From: Octopus sinensis
Taxonomy: Eukaryota
Assembly (NCBI RefSeq): GCF_006345805.1
Contig: NC_043019.1
Span: forward strand, 2,666,001 to 2,730,000
Length of the DNA stretch: 64,000 bases
Reading direction: 5' to 3'
Shown here: positions 1,828 through 35,830 of the stretch, in pieces
Layout of the letters: each line of letters opens with the position of its first letter
Numbering within the stretch: the first letter of the stretch is position 1
Made by a program: the position numbers and the translations under genes
The notes under the pieces: model-generated
What the model was told of the DNA's origin: nothing
Databases searched by the model: none
The model's input: only the letters and a program-made list of their open reading frames with translations

Positions 1828-3568
1828 GTAAGACATTTCGAATGTATTGCTTTTGGTTTTGTTAGTCTAAAATTAGATAGTTTGTGTGTAGGGATGTAAT
1901 AACAATTACTAAAGTAAATAAGTCCTAAATAAGAGAAAGTGTATCAGAATGTAGTTGTTAGTGATCGTTCATTTATGTGGTTATAGTGTTTAGGTTATCT
2001 TCTTGAATGAACACCTATGTTAAATTATTATGTATGTGTCAGTGTTAATTGATGGCTACCTTCCTATTCTTTAGGTCGTTTAGGACCTATTCTTTAGGTC
2101 CTTAGTCAATTGTCTGTGCAGTTGTGCAAGCTGCAATTCATGTTTACCTGGTTGACACTTTTGTATTTTTTTAATTGTCTATTTGAATTTTGTTAGTGTT
2201 TAATATCAATGACATTTGTTGCTCACTGTTGTTTGTACAATTGTTGTGTTATCTGCTGTGTGCAATGAAATGGTATGTCAGCAGTCTGTCATTTTGATGT
2301 TATTCATTGAATCTTAAAGAGAAAGAATTAACATAAACTTTTAAAGAATACTTGGCATCATCATGAGAATAATGTTATGTTTGCGTTTATGTAACAATAA
2401 ATGTAGATAGAAATAATTGCATAATTATGAAATATTCTTGTATGTTGTTCACGTGGGGACACTGAATAGAGTTTGCAAAACGATATAAGAAGGAATAGTA
2501 GCAGTGTGTCAGTTTGATGTTTTTCATTGAATCATAAAGAGAAATCACTGAGAAGAAAGAATAAGATGTATTGAATTTTGTTAGTATTTAATATGAATGA
2601 TATTTGTTGTTCTTCCTTGTTTGTACATTTCTTCTGATATCTACTGTATGCGGTGAAAAGTTGTTGCAGCAGTGTGTCCTTTTGCTGTTGTTCATTGAAT
2701 CTCATAGGGAAATAATCAACTTTAACAAGAAACAACATAGTATGTTGAGGAATACATTGCATCCGAATGAGTATAATGTTATGTGTGCGTATATGTGGCA
2801 ACAAATGCAAGTAGAAACAGTTGTATACTTACGAAATACAGTTGCGTGTTCTTCAGATGGTGACACAATAAATAAAGTTTGCAACACACGGAATAGACAT
2901 TAATTCACAAAAAAGATGGTTAGAGAAAAAAATAATTATGAATAAATGCTGCTTTAATAAGCACTCTGCAAATATCTTCCACTTGACAAACTTCAAAGTA
3001 TAACTATCGAGTTTACAGCTATTGAGTTATAATAATTGTGCTGTGGTTTATCTGTCATTAAATTTTGCCTTTGGATATTTGAAGTTGTTCATGTGTTCAA
3101 AAAATTATGATTCATGACAACGTCATAAATGGGTGACGAAAGTTCTGTGTGGTGATTTCAATGTTGTCATGGTTGGGTAAGTTTGGTTTTCTAACAATTT
3201 GTTCTAGATAGTAGATGTTACTTTGTGGAATGGCTTTATATTGCAGTTTGTTACTTGAAATTGAAATGGTATTTTCTATTAGTGAAAATAGATTATTGTG
3301 TATAGACACTTGATTGTCACTGTAATTTATTTCGAATGTATTGGTTTTAGTTTTGTTATCTACTGTAAATTAAGCTAGGGCCCATGTAAAAATGTAATTG
3401 CAATTACTAAAGGGAATGAGACCTAATTAAAGGAATGTATTTGTTAGTGGTCTTTAGCTTGTGCGATTAATGTTTATAGGTGTATAGGTGTTGATGTTCA
3501 ATGAACCACTATATTGAATTATTATGTATGCGTCAGTGTTAATTGATGGCTGCCTCCTTTTTGTTTAG

Positions 3569-4138
3569 GTCGTTGCAATACTGCTGAATCAGACATTGTG
3601 TTCGTTCTGGATTCTTCAACTAGCGTTACTGATGCAAACTTCAAGAAAATATTAGCTTTCATGAAAGATTTTCTGTCGGATGCTAGTATTGACTCAGGTA
3701 ATGTTCGAGTGGGGGCAGTGATTTATAGCACTGATGTAGAGGTGCAGTTTCATTTGAATCGCTACAGTTCCAAGCGTGATATCCTCGATGCTGTTGACAA
3801 CATTGCCTATGTGTATGGAAGCACAAATACATATGGAGGTCTGCACACAGCCAGAACACAGATGTTCACTGCAGAAAATGGTGACAGAGCCGGTGTTCCT
3901 AACATCATTTTCCTCATAACTGATGGCGTTTCCAACGTCAATGCTTTGCAAACGATACCAGAAGCGGAGGCTATTCGTGCAGAAAACATCCATATTTACG
4001 CTATAGGTATAGGCCTTGCAGAAACTACAGAACTCGACAAAATTGCATCATCTCCAGCAAGCGCTAACAGTTTCACTGTGGAAGATTTTAATGAGCTTCA
4101 AGGCTTAAAACACACGATATTTGAATCTTACTGTCCCG
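3569..4138 (+). CDS. VWA-domain exon, copy 1 (570 nt, phase 1-1); extracellular poly-VWA (collagen VI/matrilin-like) protein
   Basis: ttttgtttAG acceptor, G|GTACGT donor. Encodes RCNTAESDIVFVLDSSTSV (MIDAS DxSxS), GSTNT, LITDG, ending SYCP, with Cys at both domain ends. Confidence 0.92.
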
Positions 4139-5141
4139 GTACGTATATCTCGAAGAATATTACACCTGTCATCGTCCTCGTCGAAGTTGTCGTCGTTCCT
4201 TTGAATGGGGTGAACGTCTTGAGGTTGTAGCGTTTTCAGTTGTAAATGTTTGCTGTTTTGCACCTCATCTGTTTCCTTAGTGATCTTTTACACAGCTGTG
4301 CAAGCTGCGATTCTTGTTTACCTGGTTGATATTTTTGTAAATTCTTTATTGTGTGTTTGAATTTCTCTAGTGTTTAATATCAATGCTCTTTGTTTTCTGT
4401 ACATTTGATTTGATATCTGCTGATGCAGTGAAATGGAGTATGAGTTGTTTTGGTGTTATTCATTGAATCTAACAGAGCGATAATTGACTTTAAACAATAA
4501 TTTTCATCGCCATGATTGTGATGTCACGTGTGTGTATATGCAGCAATGAATGCATGTAGAAACAATTGCGTAGTTCTGAAGTATTCCTGTTTGTCGTTTA
4601 CATGGACACAGTGTGTGAATTGTTTGAAAGGACAGAAAAAGTGTGAAAATATGGTGAGTTAATTCACAAGAAACATGATGAGAAAAAGAAATACTTATGA
4701 ATAAATGCTGGTTTAATGAGCAATCTGATATATGCTCCACGTGAGACAATTTAAATGATAAGTATGTCGGTGAAAGTTATTGAAATTTAAGCATTGGTGC
4801 TGTGATTTTGACAAGCGGCATTACTTTTTGCGCTTGGATATTTAAGTTTTTCGTGTATTTGAAAGATTATGCTTGATTACGACATTGTAAAAGAATAATG
4901 AAAGTTGTTTCTGGTGTTTTCGATATTGTCGATGTTACGTAGGTTTGGTTTTTTATAAATCTGTTGTGTTTTTTTGCTGAAATTTCTATGGAATATTGTT
5001 TTAGTGAAATTAAGTTGTTTTATATAGAAAATTGATTGTCACTATGTATGTATGTATGTATGTAAGAGCAGAATAATAATTATCGGAATGTAGGAACTGA
5101 CGATTAATTTGAAATTCCTCTTGCCATTTTGCACTTTTCAG

Positions 5142-5180
5142 TAAAGTCCACAGAAACGATTGTCGATCGAAAGCCACCCG
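5142..5180 (+). CDS. Linker micro-exon 1, (V)KSTETIVDRKPP(G)
   Basis: gcacttttcAG acceptor, GTAAGA donor; 39 nt, keeps frame between VWA exons. Confidence 0.85.
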
Positions 5181-5427
5181 GTAAGACATTTCGAACGTAT
5201 TGATTTTGGTTTTGTTACCTAGTGTAAAAGAAGGCAGGGCCCGTGTAGAAATGTAATTACAATTACTAAAGGGAATGAGACCTAATTAAAGGAATGTATT
5301 TGTTAGTGGTCTTTAGCTTGTGCGATTAATGTTTATAGGTGTATAGGTGTTGATGTTCAATGAACCACTATATTGAATTATTATGTATGCGTCAGTGTTA
5401 ATTGATGGCTGCCTCCTTTTTGTTTAG

Positions 5428-5997
5428 GTCGTTGCAATACTGCTGAATCAGACATTGTGTTCGTTCTGGATTCTTCAACTAGCGTTACTGATGCAAACTT
5501 CAAGAAAATATTAGCTTTCATGAAAGATTTTCTGTCGGATGCTAGTATTGACTCGGGTAATGTTCGAGTGGGGGCAGTGATTTATAGCACTGATGTAGAG
5601 GTGCAGTTTCATTTGAATCGCTACAGTTCCAAGCGTGATATCCTCGATGCTGTTGACAACATTGCCTATGTGTATGGAAGCACAAATACATATGGAGGTC
5701 TGCACACAGCCAGAACACAGATGTTCACTGCAGAAAATGGTGACAGAGCCGGTGTTCCTAACATCATTTTCCTCATAACTGATGGCGTTTCCAACGTCAA
5801 TGCTTTGCAAACGATACCAGAAGCGGAGGCTATTCGTGCAGAAAACATCCATATTTACGCTATAGGTATAGGCCTTGCAGAAACTACAGAACTCGACAAA
5901 ATTGCATCATCTCCAGCAAGCGCTAACAGTTTCACTGTGGAAGATTTTAATGAGCTTCAAGGCTTAAAACACACGATATTTGAATCTTACTGTCCCG
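5428..5997 (+). CDS. VWA exon copy 2 (570 nt, intact)
   Basis: Same splice sites and translation as copy 1. Confidence 0.92.
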
Positions 5998-6988
5998 GTA
6001 CGTATATCTCGAAGAATATTACACCTGTCATCGTCCTCGTCGAAGTTGTCGTCGTTCCTTTGAATGGGGTGAACGTCTTGAGGTTGTAGCGTTTTCAGTT
6101 GTAAATGTTTGCTGTTTTGCACCTCATCTGTTTCCTTAGTGATCTGTTTACACAGCTGTGCAAGCTGCGATTCTTGTTTACCTGGTTGATATTTTTGTAA
6201 ATTCTTTATTGTGTGTTTGAATTTCTCTAGTGTTTAATATCAATGCTCTTTGTTTTCTGTACATTTGATTTGATATCTGCTGATGCAGTGAAATGGAGTA
6301 TGAGTTGTTTTGGTGTTATTCATTGAATCTAACAGAGCGATAATTGACTTTAAACAATAATTTTCATCGCCATGATTGTGATGTCACGTGTGTGTATATG
6401 CAGCAATGAATGCATGTAGAAACAATTGCGTAGTTCTGAAGTATTCCTGTTTGTCGTTTACATGGACACAGTGTGTGAATTGTCTGAAAGGACAGAAAAA
6501 GTGTGAAAATATGGTGAGTTAATTCACAAGAAACATGATGAGAAAAAGAAATACTTATGAATAAATGCTGGTTTAATGAGCAATCTGATATATGCTCCAC
6601 GTGAGACAATTTAAATGATAAGTATGTCGGTGAAAGTTATTGAAATTTAAGCATTGTGCTGTGTTTTGACAAGCGGCATTACTTTTTGCGCTTGGATATT
6701 TACAGTTTTTCGTGTATTTGAAAGATTATGCTTGATTACGACATTGTAAAAGAATAATGAAAGTTGTTTCTGGTGTTTTCGATATTGTCGATGTTACGTA
6801 GGTTTGGTTTTTTATAAATCTGTTGTGTTTTTTTGCTGAAATTTCTATGGAATATTGTTTTAGTGAAATTAAGTTGTTTTATATAGAAAATTGATTGTCA
6901 CTATGTATGTATGAGCAGAATAATAATTATCGGAATGTAGGAACTGACGATTAATTTGAAATTCCTCTTGCCATTTTGCACTTTTCAG

Positions 6989-7027
6989 TAAAGTCCACAG
7001 AAACGATTGTCGATCGAAAGCCACCCG
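6989..7027 (+). CDS. Linker micro-exon 2
   Basis: Identical 39-nt AG...GT exon. Confidence 0.85.
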
Positions 7028-7274
7028 GTAAGACATTTCGAACGTATTGATTTTGGTTTTGTTACCTAGTGTAAAAGAAGGCAGGGCCCGTGTAGAAATG
7101 TAATTACAATTACTAAAGGGAATGAGACCTAATTAAAGGAATGTATTTGTTAGTGGTCTTTAGCTTGTGCGATTAATGTTTATAGGTGTATAGGTGTTGA
7201 TGTTCAATGAACCACTATATTGAATTATTATGTATGCGTCAGTGTTAATTGATGGCTGCCTCCTTTTTGTTTAG

Positions 7275-7843
7275 GTCGTTGCAATACTGCTGAATCAGAC
7301 ATTGTGTTCGTTCTGGATTCTTCAACTAGCGTTACTGATGCAAACTTCAGAAAATATTAGCTTTCATGAAAGATTTTCTGTCGGATGCTAGTATTGACTC
7401 GGGTAATGTTCGAGTGGGGGCAGTGATTTATAGCACTGATGTAGAGGTGCAGTTTCATTTGAATCGCTACAGTTCCAAGCGTGATATCCTCGATGCTGTT
7501 GACAACATTGCCTATGTGTATGGAAGCACAAATACATATGGAGGTCTGCACACAGCCAGAACACAGATGTTCACTGCAGAAAATGGTGACAGAGCCGGTG
7601 TTCCTAACATCATTTTCCTCATAACTGATGGCGTTTCCAACGTCAATGCTTTGCAAACGATACCAGAAGCGGAGGCTATTCGTGCAGAAAACATCCATAT
7701 TTACGCTATAGGTATAGGCCTTGCAGAAACTACAGAACTCGACAAAATTGCATCATCTCCAGCAAGCGCTAACAGTTTCACTGTGGAAGATTTTAATGAG
7801 CTTCAAGGCTTAAAACACACGATATTTGAATCTTACTGTCCCG
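7275..7843 (+). CDS. VWA exon copy 3 (569 nt; 1-nt deletion near 7349, probable consensus error)
   Basis: cttcagaaaa versus cttcaagaaaa in the other copies; otherwise identical. Confidence 0.75.
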
Positions 7844-8849
7844 GTACGTATATCTCGAAGAATATTACACCTGTCATCGTCCTCGTCGAAGTTGTCGTCG
7901 TTCCTTTGAATGGGGTGAACGTCTTGAGGTTGTAGCGTTTTCAGTTGTAAATGTTTGCTGTTTTGCACCTCATCTGTTCCTTAGTGATCTGTTTACACAG
8001 CTGTGCAAGCTGCGATTCTTGTTTACCTGGTTGATATTTTTGTAAATTCTTTATTGTGTGTTTGAATTTCTCTAGTGTTTAATATCAATGCTCTTTGTTT
8101 TCTGTACATTTGATTTGATATCTGCTGATGCAGTGAAATGGAGTATGAGTTGTTTTGGTGTTATTCATTGAATCTAACAGAGCGATAATTGACTTTAAAC
8201 AATAATTTTCATCGCCATGATTGTGATGTCACGTGTGTGTATATGCAGCAATGAATGCATGTAGAAACAATTGCGTAGTTCTGAAGTATTCCTGTTTGTC
8301 GTTTACATGGACACAGTGTGTGAATTGTCTGAAAGGACAGAAAAAGTGTGAAAATATGGTGAGTTAATTCACAAGAAACATGATGAGAAAAAGAAATACT
8401 TATGAATAAATGCTGGTTTAATGAGCAATCTGATATATGCTCCACGTGAGACAATTTAAATGATAAGTATGTCGGTGAAATGAAGTTATTGAAATTTAAG
8501 CATTGTGCTGTGTTTTGACAAGCGGCATTCCTTTTTGCGCTTGGATATTTACAGTTTTTCGTGTATTTGAAAGATTATGCTTGATTACGACATTGTAAAA
8601 GAATAATGAAAGTTGTTTCTGGTGTTTTCGATATTGTCGATGTTACGTAGGTTTGGTTTTTTATAAATCTGTTGTGTTTTTTTGCTGAAATTTCTATGGA
8701 ATATTGTTTTAGTGAAATTAAGTTGTTTTATATAGAAAATTGATTGTCATTATATATGTATGTATGTATGTAAGAGCAGAATAATAATTATCGGAATGTA
8801 GGAACTGACGATTAATTTGAAATTCCTCTTGCCATTTTGCACTTTTCAG

Positions 8850-8888
8850 TAAAGTCCACAGAAACGATTGTCGATCGAAAGCCACCCG
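8850..8888 (+). CDS. Linker micro-exon 3
   Basis: Identical 39-nt AG...GT exon. Confidence 0.85.
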
Positions 8889-9135
8889 GTAAGACATTTC
8901 GAACGTATTGATTTTGGTTTTGTTACCTAGTGTAAAAGAAGGCAGGGCCCGTGTAGAAATGTAATTACAATTACTAAAGGGAATGAGACCTAATTAAAGG
9001 AATGTATTTGTTAGTGGTCTTTAGCTTGTGCGATTAATGTTTATAGGTGTATAGGTGTTGATGTTCAATGAACCACTATATTGAATTATTATGTATGCGT
9101 CAGTGTTAATTGATGGCTGCCTCCTTTTTGTTTAG

Positions 9136-9705
9136 GTCGTTGCAATACTGCTGAATCAGACATTGTGTTCGTTCTGGATTCTTCAACTAGCGTTACTGAT
9201 GCAAACTTCAAGAAAATATTAGCTTTCATGAAAGATTTTCTGTCGGATGCTAGTATTGACTCGGGTAATGTTCGAGTGGGGGCAGTGATTTATAGCACTG
9301 ATGTAGAGGTGCAGTTTCATTTGAATCGCTACAGTTCCAAGCGTGATATCCTCGATGCTGTTGACAACATTGCCTATGTGTATGGAAGCACAAATACATA
9401 TGGAGGTCTGCACACAGCCAGAACACAGATGTTCACTGCAGAAAATGGTGACAGAGCCGGTGTTCCTAACATCATTTTCCTCATAACTGATGGCGTTTCC
9501 AACGTCAATGCTTTGCAAACGATACCAGAAGCGGAGGCTATTCGTGCAGAAAACATCCATATTTACGCTATAGGTATAGGCCTTGCAGAAACTACAGAAC
9601 TCGACAAAATTGCATCATCTCCAGCAAGCGCTAACAGTTTCACTGTGGAAGATTTTAATGAGCTTCAAGGCTTAAAACACACGATATTTGAATCTTACTG
9701 TCCCG
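9136..9705 (+). CDS. VWA exon copy 4 (570 nt, intact)
   Basis: Same splice sites and translation as copy 1. Confidence 0.92.
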
Positions 9706-10701
9706 GTACGTATATCTCGAAGAATATTACACCTGTCATCGTCCTCGTCGAAGTTGTCGTCGTTCTTTGAATGGGGTGAACGTCTTGAGGTTGTAGCGTT
9801 TTCAGTTGTAAATGTTTGCTGTTTTGCACCTCATCTGTTTCCTTAGTGATCTGTTTACACAGCTGTGCAAGCTGCGATTCTTGTTTACCTGGTTGATATT
9901 TTTGTAAATTCTTTATTGTGTGTTTGAATTTCTCTAGTGTTTAATATCAATGCTCTTTGTTTTCTGTACATTTGATTTGATATCTGCTGATGCAGTGAAA
10001 TGGAGTATGAGTTGTTTTGGTGTTATTCATTGAATCTAACAGAGCGATAATTGACTTTAAACAATAATTTTCATCGCCATGATTGTGATGTCACGTGTGT
10101 GTATATGCAGCAATGAATGCATGTAGAAACAATTGCGTAGTTCTGAAGTATTCCTGTTTGTTTTACATGGACACAGTGTGTGAATTGTCTGAAAGGACAG
10201 AAAAAGTGTGAAAATATGGTGAGTTAATTCACAAGAAACATGATGAGAAAAAGAAATACTTATGAATAAATGCTGGTTTAATGAGCAATCTGATATATGC
10301 TCCACGTGAGACAATTTAAATGATAAGTATGTCGGTGAAAGTTATTGAAATTTAAGCATTGTGCTGTGTTTTGACAAGCGGCATTACTTTTTGCGCTTGG
10401 ATATTTACAGTTTTTCGTGTATTTGAAAGATTATGCTTGATTACGACATTGTAAAAGAATAATGAAAGTTGTTTCTGGTGTTTTCGATATTGTCGATGTT
10501 ACGTAGGTTTGGTTTTTTATAAATCTGTTGTGTTTTTTTGCTGAAATTTCTATGGAATATTGTTTTAGTGAAATTAAGTTGTTTTATATAGAAAATTGAT
10601 TGTCACTATGTATGTATGTATGTAAGAGCAGAATAATAATTATCGGAATGTAGGAACTGACGATTAATTTGAAATTCCTCTTGCCATTTTGCACCTTTCA
10701 G

Positions 10702-10740
10702 TAAAGTCCACAGAAACGATTGTCGATCGAAAGCCACCCG
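10702..10740 (+). CDS. Linker micro-exon 4
   Basis: Identical 39-nt AG...GT exon. Confidence 0.85.
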
Positions 10741-10987
10741 GTAAGACATTTCGAACGTATTGATTTTGGTTTTGTTACCTAGTGTAAAAGAAGGCAGGGC
10801 CCGTGTAGAAATGTAATTACAATTACTAAAGGGAATGAGACCTAATTAAAGGAGTGTATTTGTTAGTGGTCTTTAGCTTGTGCGATTAATGTTTATAGGT
10901 GTATAGGTGTTGATGTTCAATGAACCACTATATTGAATTATTATGTATGCGTCAGTGTTAATTGATGGCTGCCTCCTTTTTGTTTAG

Positions 10988-11558
10988 GTCGTTGCAATAC
11001 TGCTGAATCAGACATTGTGTTCGTTCTGGATTCTTCAACTAGCGTTACTGATGCAAACTTCAAGAAAATATTAGCTTTCATGAAAGATTTTCTGTCGGAT
11101 GCTAGTATTGACTCGGGGTAATGTTCGAGTGGGGGCAGTGATTTATAGCACTGATGTAGAGGTGCAGTTTCATTTGAATCGCTACAGTTCCAAGCGTGAT
11201 ATCCTCGATGCTGTTGACAACATTGCCTATGTGTATGGAAGCACAAATACATATGGAGGTCTGCACACAGCCAGAACACAGATGTTCACTGCAGAAAATG
11301 GTGACAGAGCCGGTGTTCCTAACATCATTTTCCTCATAACTGATGGCGTTTCCAACGTCAATGCTTTGCAAACGATACCAGAAGCGGAGGCTATTCGTGC
11401 AGAAAACATCCATATTTACGCTATAGGTATAGGCCTTGCAGAAACTACAGAACTCGACAAAATTGCATCATCTCCAGCAAGCGCTAACAGTTTCACTGTG
11501 GAAGATTTTAATGAGCTTCAAGGCTTAAAACACACGATATTTGAATCTTACTGTCCCG
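10988..11558 (+). CDS. VWA exon copy 5 (571 nt; extra G in a G-run near 11115, probable consensus error)
   Basis: actcggggta versus actcgggta. Confidence 0.75.
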
Positions 11559-12552
11559 GTACGTATATCTCGAAGAATATTACACCTGTCATCGTCCTCG
11601 TCGAAGTTGTCGTCGTTCCTTTGAATGGGGTGAACGTCTTGAGGTTGTAGCGTTTTCAGTTGTAAATGTTTGCTGTTTTGCACCTCATCTGTTTCCTTAG
11701 TGATCTGTTTACACAGCTGTGCAAGCTGCGATTCTTGTTTACCTGGTTGATATTTTTGTAAATTCTTTATTGTGTGTTTGAATTTCTCTAGTGTTTAATA
11801 TCAATGCTCTTTGTTTTCTGTACATTTGATTTGATATCTGCTGATGCAGTGAAATGGAGTATGAGTTGTTTTGGTGTTATTCATTGAATCTAACAGAGCG
11901 ATAATTGACTTTAAACAATAATTTTCATCGCCATGATTGTGATGTCACGTGTGTGTATATGCAGCAATGAATGCATGTAGAAACAATTGCGTAGTTCTGA
12001 AGTATTCCTGTTTGTCGTTTACATGGACACAGTGTGTGAATTGTCTGAAAGGACAGAAAAAGTGTGAAAATATGGTGAGTTAATTCACAAGAAACATGAT
12101 GAGAAAAAGAAATACTTATGAATAAATGCTGGTTTAATGAGCAATCTGATATATGCTCCACGTGAGACAATTTAAATGATAAGTATGTCGGTGAAAGTTA
12201 TTGAAATTTAAGTATTGTGCTGTGTTTTACAAGCGGCATTACTTTTTGCGCTTGGATATTTACAGTTTTTCGTGTATTTGAAAGATTATGCTTGATTACG
12301 ACATTGTAAAAGAATAATGAAAGTTGTTTCTGGTGTTTTCGATATTGTCGATGTTACGTAGGTTGGTTTTTTATAAATCTGTTGTGTTTTTTTGCTGAAA
12401 TTTCTATGGAATATTTTTTAGTGAAATTAAGTTGTTTTATATAGAAAATTGATTGTCACTATGTGTATGTATGTAAGAGCAGAATAATAATTATCGGAAT
12501 GTAGGAACTGACGATTAATTTGAAATTCCTCTTGCCATTTTGCACTTTTCAG

Positions 12553-12591
12553 TAAAGTCCACAGAAACGATTGTCGATCGAAAGCCACCCG
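12553..12591 (+). CDS. Linker micro-exon 5
   Basis: Identical 39-nt AG...GT exon. Confidence 0.85.
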
Positions 12592-12838
12592 GTAAGACAT
12601 TTCGAACGTATTGATTTTGGTTTTGTTACCTAGTGTAAAAGAAGGCAGGGCCCGTGTAGAAATGTAATTACAATTACTAAAGGGAATGAGACCTAATTAA
12701 AGGAATGTATTTGTTAGTGGTCTTTAGCTTGTGCGATTAATGTTTATAGGTGTATAGGTGTTGATGTTCAATGAACCACTATATTGAATTATTATGTATG
12801 CGTCAGTGTTAATTGATGGCTGCCTCCTTTTTGTTTAG

Positions 12839-13408
12839 GTCGTTGCAATACTGCTGAATCAGACATTGTGTTCGTTCTGGATTCTTCAACTAGCGTTACT
12901 GATGCAAACTTCAAGAAAATATTAGCTTTCATGAAAGATTTTCTGTCGGATGCTAGTATTGACTCGGGTAATGTTCGAGTGGGGGCAGTGATTTATAGCA
13001 CTGATGTAGAGGTGCAGTTTCATTTGAATCGCTACAGTTCCAAGCGTGATATCCTCGATGCTGTTGACAACATTGCCTATGTGTATGGAAGCACAAATAC
13101 ATATGGAGGTCTGCACACAGCCAGAACACAGATGTTCACTGCAGAAAATGGTGACAGAGCCGGTGTTCCTAACATCATTTTCCTCATAACTGATGGCGTT
13201 TCCAACGTCAATGCTTTGCAAACGATACCAGAAGCGGAGGCTATTCGTGCAGAAAACATCCATATTTACGCTATAGGTATAGGCCTTGCAGAAACTACAG
13301 AACTCGACAAAATTGCATCATCTCCAGCAAGCGCTAACAGTTTCACTGTGGAAGATTTTAATGAGCTTCAAGGCTTAAAACACACGATATTTGAATCTTA
13401 CTGTCCCG
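12839..13408 (+). CDS. VWA exon copy 6 (570 nt, intact)
   Basis: Same splice sites and translation as copy 1. Confidence 0.92.
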
Positions 13409-14406
13409 GTACGTATATCTCGAAGAATATTACACCTGTCATCGTCCTCGTCGAAGTTGTCGTCGTTCCTTTGAATGGGGTGAACGTCTTGAGGTTGTAG
13501 CGTTTTCAGTTGTAAATGTTTGCTGTTTTGCACCTCATCTGTTTCCTTAGTGATCTGTTTACACAGCTGTGCAAGCTGCGATTCTTGTTTACCTGGTTGA
13601 TATTTTTGTAAATTCTTTATTGTGTGTTTGAATTTCTCTAGTGTTTAATATCAATGCTCTTTGTTTTCTGTACATTTGATTTGATATCTGCTGATGCAGT
13701 GAAATGGAGTATGAGTTGTTTTTGGTGTTATTCATTGAATCTAACAGAGCGATAATTGACTTTAAACAATAATTTTCATCGCCATGATTGTGATGTCACG
13801 TGTGTGTATATGCAGCAATGAATGCATGTAGAAACAATTGCGTAGTTCTGAAGTATTCCTGTTTGTCGTTTACATGGACACAGTGTGTGAATTGTCTGAA
13901 AGGACAGAAAAAGTGTGAAAAATATGGTGAGTTAATTCACAAGAAACATGATGAGAAAAAGAAATACTTATGAATAAATGCTGGTTTAATGAGCAATCTG
14001 ATATATGCTCCACGTGAGACAATTTAAATGATAAGTATGTCGGTGTGAAAGAAATTATTGAAATTTAAGCATTGTGCTGTGTTTTGACAAGCGGCATTAC
14101 TTTTTGCGCTTGGATATTTACAGTTTTTCGTGTATTTGAAAGATTATGCTTGATTACGACATTGTAAAAGAATAATGAAGGTTGTTTCTGGTGTTTTCGA
14201 TATTGTCGATGTTACGTAGGTTTGGTTTTTTGTAAATCTGTTGTGTTTTTTTGCTGAAATTTCTATGGAATATTGTTTTAGTGAAATTAAGTTGTTTTAT
14301 ATAGAAAATTGATTGTCACTATGTATGTATGAGCAGAATAATAATTATCGGAATGTAGGAACTGACGATTAATTTGAAATTCCTCTTGCCATTTTGCACT
14401 TTTCAG

Positions 14407-14445
14407 TAAAGTCCACAGAAACGATTGTCGATCGAAAGCCACCCG
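14407..14445 (+). CDS. Linker micro-exon 6
   Basis: Identical 39-nt AG...GT exon. Confidence 0.85.
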
Positions 14446-14692
14446 GTAAGACATTTCGAACGTATTGATTTTGGTTTTGTTACCTAGTGTAAAAGAAGGC
14501 AGGGCCCGTGTAGAAATGTAATTACAATTACTAAAGGGAATGAGACCTAATTAAAGGAATGTATTTGTTAGTGGTCTTTAGCTTGTGCGATTAATGTTTA
14601 TAGGTGTATAGGTGTTGATGTTCAATGAACCACTATATTGAATTATTATGTATGCGTCAGTGTTAATTGATGGCTGCCTCCTTTTTGTTTAG

Positions 14693-15262
14693 GTCGTTGC
14701 AATACTGCTGAATCAGACATTGTGTTCGTTCTGGATTCTTCAACTAGCGTTACTGATGCAAACTTCAAGAAAATATTAGCTTTCATGAAAGATTTTCTGT
14801 CGGATGCTAGTATTGACTCGGGTAATGTTCGAGTGGGGGCAGTGATTTATAGCACTGATGTAGAGGTGCAGTTTCATTTGAATCGCTACAGTTCCAAGCG
14901 TGATATCCTCGATGCTGTTGACAACATTGCCTATGTGTATGGAAGCACAAATACATATGGAGGTCTGCACACAGCCAGAACACAGATGTTCACTGCAGAA
15001 AATGGTGACAGAGCCGGTGTTCCTAACATCATTTTCCTCATAACTGATGGCGTTTCCAACGTCAATGCTTTGCAAACGATACCAGAAGCGGAGGCTATTC
15101 GTGCAGAAAACATCCATATTTACGCTATAGGTATAGGCCTTGCAGAAACTACAGAACTCGACAAAATTGCATCATCTCCAGCAAGCGCTAACAGTTTCAC
15201 TGTGGAAGATTTTAATGAGCTTCAAGGCTTAAAACACACGATATTTGAATCTTACTGTCCCG
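14693..15262 (+). CDS. VWA exon copy 7 (570 nt, intact)
   Basis: Same splice sites and translation as copy 1. Confidence 0.92.
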
Positions 15263-16256
15263 GTACGTATATCTCGAAGAATATTACACCTGTCATCGTC
15301 CTCGTCGAAGTTGTCGTCGTTCCTTTGAATGGGGTGAACGTCTTGAGGTTGTAGCGTTTTCAGTTGTAAATGTTTGCTGTTTTGCACCTCATCTGTTTCC
15401 TTAGTGATCTGTTTACACAGCTGTGCAAGCTGCGATTCTTGTTTACCTGGTTGATATTTTTGTAAATTCTTTATTGTGTGTTTGAATTTCTCTAGTGTTT
15501 AATATCAATGCTCTTTGTTTTCTGTACATTTGATTTGATATCTGCTGATGCAGTGAAATGGAGTATGAGTTGTTTTGGTGTTATTCATTGAATCTAACAG
15601 AGCGATAATTGACTTTAAACAATAATTTTCATCGCCATGATTGTGATGTCACGTGTGTGTATATGCAGCAATGAATGCATGTAGAAACAATTGCGTAGTT
15701 CTGAAGTATTCCTGTTTGTCGTTTACATGGACACAGTGTGTGAATTGTCTGAAAGGACAGAAAAAGTGTGAAAATATGGTGAGTTAATTCACAAGAAACA
15801 TGATGAGAAAAAGAAATACTTATGAATAAATGCTGGTTTAATGAGCAATCTGATATATGCTCCACGTGAGACAATTTAAATGATAAGTATGTCGGTGTGA
15901 AAGTTATTGAAATTTAAGCATTGTGCTGTGTTTTGACAAGCGGCATTACTTTTTGCGCTTGGATATTTACAGTTTTTCGTGTATTTGAAAGATTATGCTT
16001 GATTACGACATTGTAAAAGAATAATGAAGGTTGTTTCTGGTGTTTTCGATATGTCGATGTTACGTAGGTTGGTTTTTTTAAATCTATGTGTGTTTTTTGC
16101 TGAAATTTCTATGGAATATTGTTTTAGTGAAATTAAGTTGTTTTATATAGAAAATTGATTGTCACTATGTATGTATGTATGAGCAGAATAATAATTATCG
16201 GAATGTAGGAACTGACGATTAATTTGAAATTCCTCTTGCCATTTTGCACTTTTCAG

Positions 16257-16295
16257 TAAAGTCCACAGAAACGATTGTCGATCGAAAGCCACCCG
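16257..16295 (+). CDS. Linker micro-exon 7
   Basis: Identical 39-nt AG...GT exon. Confidence 0.85.
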
Positions 16296-16534
16296 GTAAG
16301 ACATTTCGAACGTATTGATTTTGGTTTTGTTACCTAGTGTAAAAGAAGGCAGGGCCCGTGTAGAAATGTAATTACAATTACTAAAGGGAATGAGACCTAA
16401 TTAAAGGAATGTATTTGTTAGTGGTCTTTAGCTTGTGCGATTAATGTTTATAGGTGTTGATGTTCAATGAACCACTATATTGAATTATTATGTATGCGTC
16501 AGTGTTAATTGATGGCTGCCTCCTTTTTGTTTAG

Positions 16535-17107
16535 GTCGTTGCAATACTGCTGAATCAGACATTGTGTTCGTTCTGGATTCTTCAACTAGCGTTACTGATG
16601 CAAACTTCAAGAAAATATTAGCTTTCATGAAAGATTTTCTGTCGGATGCTAGTATTGACTCGGGTAATGTTCGAGTGGGGGCAGTGATTTATAGCACTGA
16701 TGTAGAGGTGCAGTTTCATTTGAATCGCTACAGTTCCAAGCGTGATATCCTCGATGCTGTTGACAACATTGCCTATGTGTATGGAAGCACAAATACATAT
16801 GGAGGTCTGCACACAGCCAGAACACAGATGTTCACTGCAGAAAATGGTGACAGAGCCGGTGTTCCTAACATCATTTTCCTCATAACTGATGGCGTTTCCA
16901 ACGTCAATGCTTTGCAAACGATACCAGAAGCGGAGGCTATTCGTGCAGAAAACATCCATATTTACGCTATAGGTATAGGCCTTGCAGAAACTACAGAACT
17001 CGACAAAATTGCATCATCTCCAGCAAGCGCTAACAGTTTCACTGTGGAAGAAAGATTTAATGAGCTTCAAGGCTTAAAACACACGATATTTGAATCTTAC
17101 TGTCCCG
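16535..17107 (+). CDS. VWA exon copy 8 (573 nt; compound indel near 17050, net +3)
   Basis: gtggaagaaagatttaat versus gtggaagattttaat; the frame is preserved. Confidence 0.8.
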
Positions 17108-18092
17108 GTACGTATATCTCGAAGAATATTACACCTGTCATCGTCCTCGTCGAAGTTGTCGTCGTTCTTTGAATGGGGTGAACGTCTGAGGTTGGTGTAG
17201 CGTTTTCAGTTGTAAATGTTTGCTGTTTTGCACCTCATCTGTTTCCTTAGTGATCTGTTTACACAGCTGTGCAAGCTGCGATTCTTGTTTACCTGGTTGA
17301 TATTTTTTGTAAATTCTTTATTGTGTGTTTGAATTTCTAGTGTTTAATATCAATGCTCTTTGTTTTTGTACATTTGATTTGATATCTGCTGATGCAGTGA
17401 AATGGAGTATGAGTTGTTTTGGTGTATTCATTGAATCTAACAGAGCGATAATTGACTTTAAACAATAATTTTCATCGCCATGATTGTGATGTCACGTGTG
17501 TGTATATGCAGCAATGAATGCATGTAGAAACAATTGCGTAGTTCTGAAGTATTCCTGTTTGTCGTTTACATGGACACAGTGTGTGAATTGTCTGAAAGGA
17601 CAGAAAAAGTGTGAAAATATGGTGAGTTAATTCACAAGAAACATGATGAGAAAAAGAAATACTTATGAATAAATGCTGGTTTAATGAGCAATCTGATATA
17701 TGCTCCACGTGAGACAATTTAAATGATAAGTATGTCGGTGAAAGTTATTGAAATTTAAGCATTGTGCTGTGTTTTGACAAGCGGCATTACTTTTTGCGCT
17801 TGGATATTTACAGTTTTTCGTGTATTTGAAAGATTATGCTTGATTACGACATTGTAAAAGAATAATGAAAGTTGTTCTGGTGTTTTCGATATTGTCGATG
17901 TTACGTAGGTTTGGTTTTTGTAAATCTGTTGTGTTTTTTTGCTGAAATTTCTATGGAATATGTTTTAGTGAAATTAAGTTTTTTTATATAGAAAATTGAT
18001 TGTCACTATGTATGTATGAGCAGAATAATAATTATCGGAATGTAGGAACTGACGATTAATTTGAAATTCCTCTTGCCATTTTGCATTTTCAG

Positions 18093-18133
18093 TAAAGTCC
18101 ACAGAGAAACGATTGTCGATCGAAAGCCACCCG
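18093..18133 (+). CDS. Linker micro-exon 8 (41 nt; AG dinucleotide insertion, probable error)
   Basis: acagagaaac versus acagaaac. Confidence 0.65.
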
Positions 18134-18375
18134 GTAAGACATTTCGAACGTATTGATTTTGGTTTTGTTACCTAGTGTAAAAGAAGGCAGGGCCCGTGTA
18201 GAAATGTAATTACAATTACTAAGGGAATGAGACCTAATTAAAGGAATGTATTTGTTAGTGGTCTTTAGCTTGTGCGATTAATGTTATAGGTGTATAGGTG
18301 TTGATGTTCAATGACCACTATATTGAATTATTATGTATGCGTCAGTGTTAATTGATGGCTGCCTCCTTTGTTTAG

Positions 18376-18941
18376 GTCGTTGCAATACTGCTGAATCAGA
18401 CATTGTGTTCGTTCTGGATTCTTCAACTAGCGTTACTGATGCAAACTTCAAGAAAATATTAGCTTTCATGAAAGATTTTCTGTCGGATGCTAGTATTGAC
18501 TCGGGTAATGTTCGAGTGGGGGCAGTGATTTATAGCACTGATGTAGAGGTGCAGTTTCATTTGAATCGCTACAGTTCCAAGCGTGATATCCTCGATGCTG
18601 TTGACAACATTGCCTATGTGTATGGAAGCACAAATACATATGGAGGTCTGCACACAGCCAGACACAGATGTTCACTGCAGAAAATGGTGACAGAGCCGGT
18701 GTTCCTAACATCATTTTCCTCATAACTGATGGCGTTTCCAACGTCAATGCTTGCAGACGATACCAGAAGCGGAGGCTATTCGTGCAGAAAACATCCATAT
18801 TTACGCTATAGGTATAGGCCTTGCAGAAACTACAGAACTCGACAAAATTGCATCATCTCCAGCAAGCGCTAACAGTTTCACTGTGGAAGATTTTAATGAG
18901 CTTCAAGGCTAAAACACACGATATTTGAATCTTACTGTCCG
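18376..18941 (+). CDS. VWA exon copy 9 (566 nt; several 1-nt deletions, low-quality consensus next to the gap)
   Basis: Same splice sites; deletions lie in short runs, and the flanking intron is also indel-rich. Confidence 0.65.
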
Positions 18942-19555
18942 GTACGTATATCTCGAAGAATATTACACCTGTCATCGTCTCGTCGAAGTTGTCGTCGTTC
19001 CTTTGAATGGGGTGAACGTCTTGAGGTTGTAGCGTTTCAGTGTGTAAATGTTTGCTGTTTGCACCTCATCTGTTTCCTTAGTGATCTGTTTACACAGCTG
19101 TGCAAGCTGCGATCTTGTTTACCTGGTTGATATTTTTGTAAATTCTTTATTATTGTGTGTTTGAATTTCTCTAGTGTTTAATATCAATGCTCTTGTTTTC
19201 TGTACATTTGATTTGATATCTGCTGATGCAGTGAAATGGAGTATGAGTTGTTTGGTGGTTATTCATTGAATCTAACAGAGCGATATTGACTTTAAACAAT
19301 AATTTTCATCGCCATGATTGTGATGTCACGTGTGTGTATATGCAGCAATGAATGCATGTAGAAAGAAACAATTGCGTAGTTCTGAAGTATTCCTGTTTGT
19401 CGTTACATGGACACAGTGTTGTGAATGTCTGAAAGGACAGAAAAGTGTGAAAATATGGTGAGTTAATTCACAAGAAAATGATGAGAAAAAGAAATACTTA
19501 TGAATAAATGCTGGTTTATGAGCAATCTGATATATGCTCCACAGGAGAAAATTTA

Positions 19556-19655
19556 NNNNNNNNNNNNNNNNNNNNNNNNNNNNNNNNNNNNNNNNNNNNN
19601 NNNNNNNNNNNNNNNNNNNNNNNNNNNNNNNNNNNNNNNNNNNNNNNNNNNNNNN
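19556..19655. other. Assembly gap (100 N)
   Basis: Exactly 100 Ns, a placeholder-size gap ending the array. Confidence 0.99.
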
Positions 19656-20753: not shown

Positions 20754-21147
20754 GTGTGTGTGGTAAGTAGCTTGTTTACCAACCACATGGTTCCGGGTTC
20801 AGTCCCAGTGCATGGCACCTTGGGCAAGTGTCTTCTGCTATAGCCTCGAGCTGACCAATGCCTTGTAAGTGGATTTGGTAGATGGAAACTGAAAGAAGCC
20901 TGTCGTATATATGTATATATATATATATGTATGTATGTATGTGTATATGTTTGTGTGTCTGTGTTTGTCCCCCTAGCATTGCTTGACAACCGATGCTGGT
21001 GTGTTTGCGTCCCTGTAACTTAGCGGTTCGGCAAAAGAGACCAATAGAATAAGGGCTTACAAAGAATAAGTCCCGGGGTCGATTTGCTCGACTAAAGGCG
21101 GTGCTCCAGCATGGCCGCAGTCAAATGACTGAAACAAGTAAAAGAGT
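20754..21147 (+). mobile_element. tRNA-derived SINE family A (CORE-like)
   Basis: Head with B box GGTTCAGTCCC, CACCTTGGGCAAGT core (similar to the CORE-SINE domain), internal TA/TG microsatellite, GTAAAAGAG tail. Confidence 0.88.
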
Positions 21148-21563
21148 ATATTTTTTGTATTTCATGCATTTATTAATATAGTAAAACTTTATATACTGAC
21201 CCGTCTAACTCGCTTATCCCTACATTTATTTCTATGCCTGTTCAAGTTAAATTCTCTTGAGTGCTAAGTGTATTCTATACGGAGAACATCTGATTCTCAT
21301 CTATGAACTATATATATATCTATATATAAATGTGTGTGAAGATTTATGTATATGCACACGTGTGTGCATCTACATGCACTTATTTTTACAACAGATTCAG
21401 AAGCTTTCTAACTTAACACTATATACTGCTAGCTGTGTCTCCTCTGCTCTTGGCTCTCATCTGTTGCTTCAGCACCCTAACTTCTTGTAACAGTTAAGCC
21501 ATTCTTAAGCTCTAGTTAGTTGCTGTCTCATCTCTTCCTTTTTTCTATCATGTAACGTTTCAG

Positions 21564-24639: not shown

Positions 24640-26420
24640 CTTACTTTCACTCCAATGATCCTTACCTCCCCCTCGTCCATCCTTACATCTACATCTTCAT
24701 TCCTTACCGCCACTCCTTCAGCATTTACTTCCACTATTTTAAACTTTGCCTCCACTCTGTCTATACCTCTCGCCTCCACTCTCTCCATGCCTCTCGCCTC
24801 CACTCTCTCCATGCCTCTCGCCTCCACTCTCTCCATGCATCTCGCCTCCACTCTCTCCATGCATCTCGCCTCCACTCTCTCCATGCCTCTCGCCTCCACT
24901 CTCTCCATGCCTCTCGCCTCCACTCTCTCCATGCCTCTCGCCTCCACTCTCTCCATGCATCTCGCCTCCACTCTCTCCATGCATCTCGCCTCCACTCTCT
25001 CCATGCATCTCGCCTCCACTCTCTCCATGCCTCTCGCCTCCACTCTCTCCATGCCTCTCGCCTCCACTCTCTCCATGCCTCTCGCCTCCACTCTCTCCAT
25101 GCCTCTCGCCTCACTCTCTCCATGCCTCTCGCTCCACTCTCTCCATGCCTCTCGCCTCCACTCTCTCCATGCCTCTCGCCTCCACTCTCTCCATGCCTCT
25201 CGCCTCCACTCTCTCCATGCCTCTCGCCTCCACTCTCTCCATGCCTCTCGCCTCCACTCTCTCCATGCCTCTCGCCTCCACTCTCTCCATGCCTCTCGCC
25301 TCCACTCTCTCCATGCCTCTCGCCTCCACTCTCTCCATGCCTCTCGCCTCCACTCTCTCCATGCCTCTCGCCTCCACTTCTCCATGCCTCTCGCCTCCAT
25401 TCTCTCCATGCCTCTCGCCTCCACTCTCCATGCCTCTCGCCTCCACTCTCTCCATGCCTCTCGCCTCCACTCTCTCCATGCCTCTCGCCTCCACTCTCTC
25501 CATGCCTCTCGCCTCCACTCTCTCCATGCCTCTCGCCTCCACTCTCTCCATGCCTCTCGCCTCCACTCTCTCCATGCCTCTCGCCTCCACTCTCTCCATG
25601 CCTCTCGCCTCCACTCTCTCCATGCCTCTCGCCTCCACTTTCTCCATGCCTCTCGCCTCCATTCTCTCCATGCCTCTCGCCTCCACTCTCCATGCCTCTC
25701 GCCTCCACTCTCTCCATGCCTCTCTCGCCTCCACTCTCTCCATGCCTCTCGCCTCCACTCTCTCCATGCCTCTTGCCTCCACTCTCTCCATGCCTCTCGC
25801 TTCCACTCTCTCCATGCCTCTCGCCTCAACTCTCTCCATGCCTCTCGCCTCCACTCTCTCCATGCCTCTCGCCTCCACTCTCTCCATGCCTCTCGCCTCC
25901 ACTCTCTCCATGCCTCTCGCCTCCACTCTCTCCATGCCTCTCGCCTCCACTCTCTCCATGCCTCTCGCCTCCACTCTCTCCATGCCTCTCGCCTCCACTC
26001 TCCTCATTCTTCTTGCCTCCACTCCTCATTTTTATCACCTCCTTTTCTCATACCCCTCGCCTCCATTCTCCTCATACCCCTCACCTCCACTCTCCTCATA
26101 CCCCTCACCTCCACTCTCCTCATACCCCTCACCTCCACTCTCCTCATACCCCTCACCTCCACTCTCCTCATACCCCTCGCCGCCACTCTCCTCATACCCC
26201 TCGCCTCCACTCTCATCACATCCCTCACCTCCACTCTCCTCATTCTTCTCGCCTCCACTCCTCATTTTTATCACCTCCTTTCCTCATACCCCTCGCTGCC
26301 ACTCTCCTCACACCCCTCACCTCCACTCTCCTCATTCCCCTTGTCTCCTCTCTCCTCATACCCATCATCTCCACTCTCCTCATACCTCCGCTCTCTTCCT
26401 CCATTGCCTCCACTTTAAAC
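24640..26420. repeat. 24-bp pyrimidine-rich minisatellite (CTCGCCTCCACTCTCTCCATGCCT)n with degenerate flanks
   Basis: About 50 near-identical units ~24770-26000; variant unit CTCACCTCCACTCTCCTCATACCC ~26000-26400; 21-bp degenerate units at 24640-24745. Confidence 0.97.
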
Positions 26421-27574: not shown

Positions 27575-27890
27575 TGCACAGCTCAGAGATCAGGGGTTCT
27601 CTTCAACTTGAGCCACTACTTCTCTGCATTGACAGGTAACAGCTCTGGTACTATGGACATGTGATTAGAATGTTGCGGGAAAGAATTGTAAGACAGATTC
27701 TTCAAGCCAAAGGAACAGGTAGGAGGCCTAGCAATAGAGCAAGAAAAGCAGGTTTTGGGACTACTCCTCGTTTCAATAGCTCATACTTAGGAATCCAGCA
27801 GGAAAGGACAACAATGGGTGTTTCGTACAGGTCCCTATGGAAGAGGTGCCCGAGGACTCTACTCCCATTCCTTCCAGGCATAGTGAACAG
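27575..27890 (+). mobile_element. RTE-clade LINE 3' fragment
   Basis: Translates as SSEIRGSLQLEPLLLCIDR*QLWYYGHVIRMLRERIVRQILQAKGTGRRP, matching the RTE C-terminal ..QLRWFGHV.RM..GRRPRGRP motif. Confidence 0.8.
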
Positions 27891-28966
27891 AAAAGGTGAA
27901 GTGATGGAAATTTCATCTGTCATCAGGAGAAGGATTTCCTGGTATTTCAGACCAAATCCTGCTTTGGAGAAATTGGAAAGTCTTTAACTTTAATAGTCAA
28001 ATGATTAAAAAAATACTGTTCTCTTTCTTTAACAAAATGTTCAATTTGAAGCCTCAAGGAATCTTCCCCAACATCATATGAACCTTAAAGAAAATAATGT
28101 TATGCATTAAAAGTAGCTTAATGTGATTTGTCATGAAGGTAATAAATAAATATTCTACATGTTTGCAATATTTAAACAACTGTTCCTGGATCAATTTAGT
28201 TGTACAATATATTTTCTGTGCTGAATGAAGATATATCTGATATCATTGTGCACGGCTGAATTAAAGTGTGGATTAAATATTAGTTCTAATGATTATTAAT
28301 GATTTAATGTATAGGAAAATAGTGCTTTTTTTCTGAAGGAATATATCATGCTTACATTATGAATGTCCATTTAACAAGGATATTTGCATGATTTGTTTCA
28401 TCTTTGAGAGTCCAATGCAGGGATTGAGCAAGTGTTTGACTTTTATAAATTATTGTATGGTTTCCATAGTGATGAAGAATGCTTCCCCTTGTAGTGCACT
28501 CCTCTTTGACTGGTCATTGTTGGGTGAGGCCAATTGAATCATTCAGCTATGAACTCCTTATTAGAAGTTGTCTTTTATATTGCATACACAATTTAGCTTT
28601 ATAATTAGTTGAAGTTTCCACTATAATGGTTACTGGAAAAGGTGTATTTATCTCAGAGGTGTACTTGACGTGCAAGTGACTTGACTTGTAACTGTGTTGA
28701 AACTAAAAGGATAGCAGTATAGAACATACATGTTAGCCATTCAAAAACACAAAGACTGTTAACATTAATTAACCATTATTAATTAGGCGTCAAAGTTTTC
28801 ATTGCATCAACTGCAACCTGGTCACAGACATGCGGTGTCATTTTGATGTCATGTAACAAATAGTAAATGATTATATGAAGTTAACAGTTTTTGAATGGCT
28901 AATACATGTTTGAGCTGAAATACTTAAATACATCAATTGCAACAAGGAAGACAAGATTAGATCATA

Positions 28967-29290: not shown

Positions 29291-29676
29291 TGACTGGCTC
29301 CCTACTAGTTTATTACAGTGGCCTATGCTTCTAAGATATGGTTGGGCTTGTACTACCTCCTCTCATATGCTCCCAAGTCAGTTATGTTTCCTCTTCTACT
29401 CATTCATTGTTACTCTCTGTTAGGTCTTTTATGAAAGAAATACTCTTCATGATGCTTCTTTCCCACTGGAATTCCAGTTTTACGCATGATTTCCTTGAAT
29501 CTGTCCACTTCTGAAACATTAACCACATCGATTTCATTTGTCTTCTTGGACCTGCAAAGGCCATGACAAAGCTGTTTCTTTCAGACAAAATTAAGAGAAA
29601 CTAAAATACCATCTCCATACCATACCTAATTCTTCATAATTTTGACTGACACTGTTAGTTTTTAATTTCATAGATA

Positions 29677-30082
29677 GGCGTAGGAGTGGCTGTGTAGTAA
29701 GTAGCTTGCTTATGAACCACATGGTTCCGGGTTCAGTCCCACTGCGTGGCACCTTGGGTAAGTGTCTTCTACTATAGCCTCGGGCCGACCAAAGCCTTGG
29801 GAGTGGATTTGGTATACGGAAACAGAAAGAAGCCCGTCGTATATATGTATATATATATATATGTGCGTGTTTGTGTGTCTGTGTTTGTCCCTCCAGCATC
29901 ACTTGACAACCGATGCTGGTGCGTTTACGTCCCCGTAACTTAGCGGTTTGGCAAAAAGAGACCGATAAAATAAGTACTAGGCTTACAAAGAATAAGTCCT
30001 GGGGGTCGATTTGATCGACTAAAGGTGGTGCTCCAGCATGGCCAGTGTCACATGACTGAAACAAGTAAAAGAGTAAAAGAAT
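29677..30082 (+). mobile_element. SINE family A, near full length
   Basis: GGCGTAGGAGTGGCTGTGTAGTAAG head (A box), GGTTCAGTCCC B box, core and tail. Confidence 0.9.
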
Positions 30083-35559: not shown

Positions 35560-35830
35560 AACCAAGTACAAGAAGAGTCAGGTGTAGTGTGCATGAAAGA
35601 AGACTGTGCTGGTATGGACATGTGATGCATGTGAATGAGGACAGGTGTATAAAGAAGTTCTGCTCACTTAATGTGGATGAAGCTTGCAAAAGAGAGAAAC
35701 TTAGGAAGACAAGGAGTGAAATGGTAAAGATTGATCTCGGAGCCTTGAACCTCATGGTGAACAAAGGACTGGGATATCTGCCAATATGATGTTCTTGAGA
35801 AGACATGCTCATCAGAGAAATTGAGATTCT
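35560..35830 (+). mobile_element. RTE-clade LINE 3' fragment
   Basis: RCSVHERRLCWYGHVMHVNEDRCIKKFCSLNVDEACKREKLRKT resembles the RTE C-terminus. Confidence 0.8.

Follow-up and report, generated by a model that had tools for sequence, protein, structure and literature searches.

The 64,000-nucleotide window of Octopus sinensis DNA analyzed here (contig NC_043019.1; G000:C23:2666001-2730000 of a 2.72-Gb assembly in 13,516 contigs) contains a head-to-tail array of exons encoding von Willebrand factor type A (VWA) domains. Taken as a whole, the explanation that we regard as likely is that window positions 3569 to 19555 are the repetitive middle of one long plus-strand gene, LOC115223639 (protein A0A7E6FM90), which is annotated as “collagen alpha-3(VI) chain”. 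This gene is best read as encoding a secreted, multivalent, collagen-VI-like poly-VWA protein of mucus or matrix, with an intragenic coding repeat that is kept uniform by unequal exchange. The annotated name reflects VWA similarity only. The array, its coordinates, its micro-exons and the near-identity of its units are real and far beyond chance, and the product is expressed, is spliced in the predicted way and occurs in skin mucus.

Structure and expression of the array

Repeat detection combined with an anchored search revealed nine head-to-tail units with a period of 1841 to 1861 nt, extending from position 3569 to a 100-N gap at position 19556. Tandem Repeats Finder, used with a maximum period of 500, missed the array, which was detected by a separate repeat search. 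The units start at positions 3569, 5428, 7275, 9136, 10988, 12839, 14693, 16535 and 18376, and each is made of a 570-nt VWA exon, a 991-nt intron (intron A), a 39-nt micro-exon and a 247-nt intron (intron B). The VWA exon is bordered by AG/GT CGT TGC and TGT CCC G/GT and the micro-exon by AG/TA AAG and CCC G/GT. By design, both are phase 1 on either side and have AG...GT splice sites, so that the frame is kept whatever the number of units joined. The alternation of nine VWA exons with eight 39-nt micro-exons that had been proposed from the sequence was borne out in coordinates, splice sites and phase design, with micro-exon 8 being 41 nt long as assembled. Units U1 to U7 show 0 to 10 differences from the consensus per approximately 1850 nt, introns included, which agrees with the proposal that exons and introns are about 99% identical and that recent expansion or concerted evolution is implied. 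Some unit-specific variants, including microsatellite length and several substitutions, are common to adjacent units.

All coding pieces of the array lie on the plus strand. VWA exons U1 (3569 to 4138; one synonymous difference), U2 (5428 to 5997; equal to the consensus), U4 (9136 to 9705), U6 (12839 to 13408) and U7 (14693 to 15262) are 570 nt long and intact, and U8 (16535 to 17107; 573 nt) carries an in-frame 3-nt insertion that changes D to ER. As assembled, the frame is shifted in U3 (7275 to 7843; 569 nt) by a 1-nt deletion in an A run, in U5 (10988 to 11558; 571 nt) by a 1-nt insertion, and in U9 (18376 to 18941; 566 nt) by four 1-nt deletions. Micro-exons 1 to 7 (5142 to 5180, 6989 to 7027, 8850 to 8888, 10702 to 10740, 12553 to 12591, 14407 to 14445 and 16257 to 16295) are all 39 nt long, the first encoding VKSTETIVDRKPP, and micro-exon 8 (18093 to 18133; 41 nt) is frameshifted as assembled by a 2-nt insertion. 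After exon U9, 614 nt of intron A remain before the unit is cut, 1180 nt from its start, by the scaffold gap (N run 19556 to 19655); the sequence on the right-hand side of the gap has no homology to the unit.

Published proteomic data provide evidence for the splicing of these pieces. In the accessible part of the supplement to a study of octopus skin mucus (PMC11431876), the peptide [K].HTIFESYCPVK.[S] is reported with high confidence in A0A7E6FM90 at residues 1022, 1225, 1428 and 1631, sites that are exactly 203 residues apart. It corresponds to the ...GLK/HTIFESYCP of the window followed by VK/S..., across the junction between VWA exon and micro-exon. The peptide needs the two exons to be joined, because unspliced read-through would give CPGTY. 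The proteomic test for a junction peptide suggested by the original prediction had in this way already been answered, at the 203-aa spacing, and the tissue role, which was described there as unknown, can now be connected with skin mucus, where, according to the same source, the protein is present and lower in senescent animals. Six other tryptic peptides of the unit were not found among the matches listed in the accessible part of the mucus-proteome supplement. The unit is present, unspliced, in Logan contigs of two further octopods (SRR3401912 is an octopus metatranscriptome), and no spliced junction was found in the Logan contigs of the nearest relatives, all of which are unspliced. In two other octopod sequences, and in a unit 0 that precedes the array, the micro-exon is 39 nt long, is flanked by AG/GT and keeps its open frame; about half of the residues differ among the encoded peptides (VKSTETIVDRKPP, VRPELTPPPPKPP, VMPEITTPSPKPP and VRPKITDSHSKPP).

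The spliced 203-aa unit matches the Pfam VWA profile (PF00092) over profile positions 1 to 171 of 174, with an E value of 1.6e-46 and 159 bits (cut-off of 23.8). All residues of the metal ion-dependent adhesion site (MIDAS; D15, S17, S19, T88 and D119) occur in the unit, each with at least 90% conservation among 50 relatives, and the flanking Cys3 and Cys189 are also present, as expected for the 203-aa repeat with intact MIDAS and flanking cysteines that had been proposed. From these conserved residues, the array units are predicted to bind metal at the MIDAS. The AlphaFold2 model of the unit (predicted local distance difference test of 91.3, predicted template modeling score of 0.90) shows alternating strands and helices, and an alpha/beta Rossmann-like VWA fold is confidently predicted. 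Foldseek gave template modeling (TM) scores of 0.85 to 0.91 to its closest structural matches, namely integrin I domains (that of collagen-binding integrin alpha1 among them), the N2 and N5 domains of collagen VI alpha3 and mussel PTMP1, and among PDB sequence matches collagen VI alpha3 ranked best and PTMP1 second. The ratio of nonsynonymous to synonymous substitution rates (dN/dS) of the VWA exon versus other octopods is 0.13 to 0.22 at a dS of approximately 0.22, a sequence comparison that indicates purifying selection on this exon.

The gene beyond the array

The start of the gene, with a signal-peptide-like N-terminus (MGRWLEISCFLLFLFYFSSQDSVYG), lies more than 53 kb upstream of the window. 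In the N-terminal part of A0A7E6FM90 that is printed, residues 38 to 227 and 238 to 399 match VWA exons located 53.6 and 39.6 kb upstream of the window at 98% and 100%, respectively. Four intact upstream VWA exons are found on the plus strand between window coordinates −53644 and −16293. They are approximately 31% identical to the array unit and are without the DxSxS motif, the sequences at this site being VFLIHTSNQ, VFLVHMSKK, VFAIHISEN and IFVVGTSLK. A 33-nt phase-1 linker micro-exon near −40030, between the two N-terminal VWA exons, shows that the pairing of a VWA exon with a linker micro-exon is a feature of the whole gene. Nearer to the array, exon(−1) at −1230 to −661 is an intact phase-1 VWA exon with 84% identity to the array unit. 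In total, one strand carries at least 14 VWA exons, all phase 1/1 where checked. The architecture of a poly-VWA gene made of VWA exons and linker micro-exons, as originally proposed, is upheld by these observations; what had not been anticipated is that the gene is already annotated as LOC115223639 and is much larger than the array.

The array is preceded by the remains of other units, all on the plus strand. In unit 0, the VWA pseudo-exon (244 to 795) is decayed, being 49% identical to the array unit and having four stop codons; the nucleotide identity of unit 0 to the array unit is 71%, with many substitutions. Its micro-exon (1789 to 1827; 39 nt, AG/GT) is intact, encodes VRPKITDSHSKPP and probably links exon(−1) to U1. 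A further unit relic (2099 to 3568) has homology to introns A and B only, its VWA exon and micro-exon having been deleted. The last 240 nt of the relic (3329 to 3568) match intron B at 95% identity and provide U1 with its acceptor site.

On the other side, the unplaced contig C2632 (13,447 nt), read in reverse, starts with 450 nt that are 97% identical to the long intron of the unit. The overlap with the window comprises the 235 nt that precede the gap (19321 to 19555); beyond the repeat, the contig has two VWA exons of the type of a second array described below, of which one is intact and the other frameshifted. This contig may belong in the gap at 19556 to 19655 and hold the 3′ continuation of the gene. 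No run of six or more Gly-X-Y triplets was found in any frame in the 144 kb around the array and in C2632, a more distant 3′ exon being possible. In the same sequences, the search for EGF domains gave only low-complexity cysteine patterns; Kunitz and FN3 domains were not found in the 144 kb around the array. A tblastn search with relatives gave VWA exons only.

In the part of the window that follows the gap, no VWA or other recognizable coding exon and no match to the unit or to the exons of relatives (tblastn) were found; this part contains only dispersed repeats, a minisatellite and retrotransposon debris. The minisatellite (24748 to 26260) has a 24-nt period (GCCTCCACTCTCTCCATGCCTCTC), approximately 63 copies and a 94% match, is strongly C-rich on the plus strand and is open in all six frames, with open reading frames (ORFs) of at least 600 aa. 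It was considered as a mucin-like exon of LOC115223639 and dropped, given that it has no Pfam hit and no coding support. A dispersed repeat of approximately 390 nt that resembles a short interspersed nuclear element occurs in at least a dozen copies on both strands, 70 to 88% identical (e.g., 20757 to 21148, 29669 to 30094 and 57856 to 58241), and also upstream of the window and in C2632. A fragment of the ORF2 tail of a non-long-terminal-repeat retrotransposon lies on the minus strand at 58473 to 58927 (Pfam DUF6451, E value of 1.5e-11), and ORFs resembling a reverse-transcriptase tail, with no Pfam hits, are located at 27640 to 27984 and 35463 to 35786. A 184-nt tandem duplication (52355 to 52721; two copies, 85%) and a long imperfect (CA)n microsatellite (62295 to 62506) were also observed. 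Rfam and tRNA scans revealed no RNA genes.

Copy number, frameshifts and homogenization

Several points weigh against the interpretation given above. The array runs into an assembly gap, which bounds the copy number only as at least nine, and no downstream exon of the gene was found in the rest of the window. The RefSeq model (1696 aa) has four junction-peptide units only, versus at least nine units plus five upstream domains in the DNA. In the accessible supplement, support for the junction consists of one peptide, an O. vulgaris peptide whose match is to a database entry based on the present O. sinensis assembly. As assembled, 4 of the 17 coding pieces (U3, U5, U9 and micro-exon 8) are out of frame. 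The cross-linking function and the metal dependence are assigned by homology only, and concerted evolution is not separable, on present data, from independent recent expansions in each lineage.

The position of the array next to a scaffold gap, together with the overlap between C2632 and the array end, could indicate that the array was overexpanded or chimerically joined and that the true locus has one or two units. Assemblers, however, tend to collapse near-identical repeats such as these, not to expand them. Moreover, the units have distinct variants, partly common to neighbors, which speak against such an artifact, and a gene model with four or more units follows from both the annotated protein and the peptide mapping. 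In another octopod, an independent graph built from short reads also closes the unit on itself: the 1949-nt contig L020 has identical 30-nt ends (k−1), which makes it a circular 1919-nt unitig, as expected of a uniform tandem array in a de Bruijn graph. This indicates that the unit is tandem in that octopod, and the cut point of L020 is bridged, at 99.8%, by a contig from another run. Homologues in five other molluscs carry three to nine such repeats. An assembly artifact is, on this evidence, highly improbable.

The differences between the units consist of approximately 58 indel events versus at most 48 substituted columns, many of the latter being alignment shifts. They are concentrated in U8 and U9, which adjoin the gap and have 22 to 23 differences each versus 0 to 10 in the other units. 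The frameshifted exons are nearly free of substitutions. Similar isolated indels are seen in the second array, approximately 440 kb away, where four of the eight exons are frameshifted as assembled, and RefSeq flags the gene model as “LOW QUALITY PROTEIN”. PMC12564688, citing Li et al. 2020, describes the 2.72-Gb O. sinensis assembly as based on PacBio, Illumina and Hi-C data. The predominance of indels, densest beside the gap, looks like the signature of consensus error and is unlike the decay seen in unit 0. The indels in U3, U5, U9 and micro-exon 8 are most likely errors in the long-read consensus, arising close to a contig end of a PacBio-based assembly, and would not be real lesions. The proposal that all pieces are phase 1 holds for the exon design and fails for the sequence as assembled, where U3 is at −1, U5 at +1 and micro-exon 8 at +2, and U9 has four deletions. 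Likewise, owing to the frameshifted pieces, the assembled sequence contains no uninterrupted frame for the product of at least approximately 1800 aa that had been proposed.

If the lesions in these four pieces were instead real, the array would be partly dead, with several pseudo-exons that the mRNA skips or that truncate it, and a protein made of some units only. The lesions are present in the assembled sequence, and the true decay of unit 0 just upstream, with its four stops, shows that units can die. The four junction-peptide sites of the RefSeq model would fit a shortened protein, and the frame would survive skipping, since all exons are phase 1/1. However, unit 0 is substitution-rich, whereas the differences within the array are dominated by indels and clustered near the contig end, and the frameshifted exons have almost no substitutions. 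The isolated indels of the second array follow the same pattern, and the “low quality” label denotes a frame that was corrected against the genome. We consider real lesions in the array to be unlikely, and consensus error to be the better account of the frameshifts.

The array in the window is not isolated in the genome, where at least 143 VWA-exon matches were found. The second array, on the minus strand at G000:C23:3125795-3147705, has eight units of 3.02 kb that are 98 to 99.6% identical, except V4 (92 to 93%) and V8 (76 to 82%), and encodes a protein 65% identical to the unit of the window. Outside octopods, near-identical repeats within one protein were found in Biomphalaria glabrata “collagen alpha-3(VI)-like” (nine domains, 96 to 100%), Haliotis rufescens LOC124110407 (seven domains, 100%), Sinanodonta woodiana COL6A (six domains, 93 to 99%), Elysia crispata (several repeats) and COL6A of the cuttlefish Acanthosepion pharaonis (several repeats with an identical linker). 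The repeats of these five molluscs are only 50 to 60% identical to the octopus unit, and the closest relatives are annotated as “collagen alpha-3/4(VI)-like”, “matrilin-like” or “cartilage matrix protein-like”.

In the original prediction, identical VWA repeats were regarded as exceptional, and orthologs with the same architecture as a finding that would count against it. Among molluscs such repeats, 93 to 100% identical, are not exceptional, and relatives that have them are present in public annotation. The literature search found no paper describing near-identical VWA arrays or concerted evolution of VWA repeats, or discussing these relatives, and gene identifiers of LOC115223639 were not found in the main texts of papers. 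The Haliotis protein XP_048237149.1 combines its seven 100%-identical VWA repeats with dozens of identical EGF-like repeats of approximately 40 aa and a diverged terminal VWA domain, and Sinanodonta KAL3854705.1 ends in SRCR domains. From these sequences, the uniform VWA array appears joined to different tails in different lineages.

In a maximum-likelihood domain tree, the repeats cluster by species. The second octopus array is sister to the cuttlefish COL6A repeats, and exon(−1) groups with its O. bimaculoides orthologue. The clustering by species, together with the uniform tandem unit that the related octopod has of its own, fits continuing homogenization by unequal exchange, and we infer that an array, and not just one unit, was present in their common ancestor. 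Exons and introns would be kept alike by unequal crossing-over and gene conversion among the units, and unequal exchange probably makes the copy number variable. This homogenizing process would also act on the sister arrays in the genome and on homologous genes across molluscs.

The near-identity could also be a matter of youth, one ancestral unit having been amplified in a single, very recent burst in this species. This is in line with a divergence within the array that is near zero even in introns, and with the old and diverged state of the flanking exon(−1) and unit 0, which would be out of the reach of homogenization. Yet the related octopod, at a dS of approximately 0.22, also has a tandem, internally uniform unit, the second octopus array and the cuttlefish repeats are sister groups and each is uniform within its species, and gastropods and a bivalve likewise have uniform repeats. 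Many independent bursts are less parsimonious than ongoing turnover, although both involve unequal exchange. A single burst has some merit as an explanation and is, in our view, improbable; ongoing homogenization remains the preferred one.

Comparison with known systems and proposed function

Among known proteins, the closest parallel is the N-terminal array of vertebrate collagen VI alpha3 (PDB 9han, 6snk and 4igi), which is also a string of VWA domains and gave the best PDB sequence match and a Foldseek TM score of approximately 0.9. In COL6A3, each VWA domain is encoded by one phase-1 exon of approximately 600 nt, and exon skipping alters the number of domains. The octopus gene shares this organization of one domain per phase-1 exon. 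It differs in that no Gly-X-Y triple helix, Kunitz or FN3 domain was found in the 144 kb around the array, in that its linkers are separate micro-exons, and in that its array domains are approximately 100% identical, whereas the vertebrate collagen VI VWA domains are 25 to 35% identical to each other. For the VWA domains of collagen VI, a “beads-on-a-string” geometry has been proposed, as stated in PMC3919171.

The octopus gene belongs in the expanded family of molluscan VWA-domain proteins (VWAPs) without a triple helix. In the pearl oyster, 164 such proteins have been reported, with VWA domains most like those of collagens and a proposed role as matrix cross-linkers (PMC5597905), and VWA proteins are present in snail mucus (PMC10475054). 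Near-identical tandem domain arrays such as that of the octopus are not among what these papers describe. The chitin-binding parts of Pif/BMSP, the EGF part of the Haliotis relative and the SRCR part of the Sinanodonta relative were not found at the octopus locus. Mussel byssus PTMP1 (PDB 4cn8), which binds collagen, is like the octopus protein a secreted molluscan VWA protein with a MIDAS (second-best PDB match, E value of 2e-34; Foldseek TM score of 0.9). Unlike the octopus gene with its at least nine near-identical domains, it has only two VWA domains, which are unlike each other, and no repeat array. Matrilin combines VWA and EGF domains with a C-terminal coiled coil, and EGF was not found around the octopus array.

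With regard to the organization of the repeat, the parallels lie in other domain families. The kringle IV-2 repeat of LPA and abalone VERL are made of near-identical exon-plus-intron units placed head to tail with the frame kept; the copy number is variable in LPA, and the VERL repeats are homogenized within species and diverge between species. The octopus array shares with the LPA type the multi-exon unit with introns, the head-to-tail near-identity and the frame-preserving design, and its repeats share with VERL the clustering by species. The domain types differ, being kringle in LPA, ZP-N in VERL and VWA in the octopus.

The gene layout comprises a signal peptide, four diverged VWA exons without DxSxS, the 84%-identical VWA exon and at least nine tandem 1.85-kb units. 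Its product would be a secreted beads-on-a-string chain of cation-binding VWA domains separated by short proline-rich linkers. In mucus or extracellular matrix, such a chain would serve as a multivalent cross-linker or network former, and multivalent, cation-dependent cross-linking is plausible, judging from the domains that are encoded. More tentatively, one conserved molluscan subfamily of secreted poly-VWA proteins may exist, with arrays that are continually homogenized and resized. The number of identical beads could then be a heritable, possibly splice-adjustable “valency dial” for gel strength, with the octopus gene as the representative of the subfamily in cephalopod skin mucus.

This kind of system is already known, and the octopus gene adds a tidy example to it. 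The locus illustrates the underrepresentation of a repetitive gene in a long-read draft assembly and in the associated gene model, and one particular, highly repetitive poly-VWA gene is now connected with the skin mucus of octopus. The recurrence of uniform VWA-exon arrays among cephalopods, gastropods and bivalves points to a general molluscan way of building multivalent cross-linkers of gels and matrices and to a likely source of copy-number variation.

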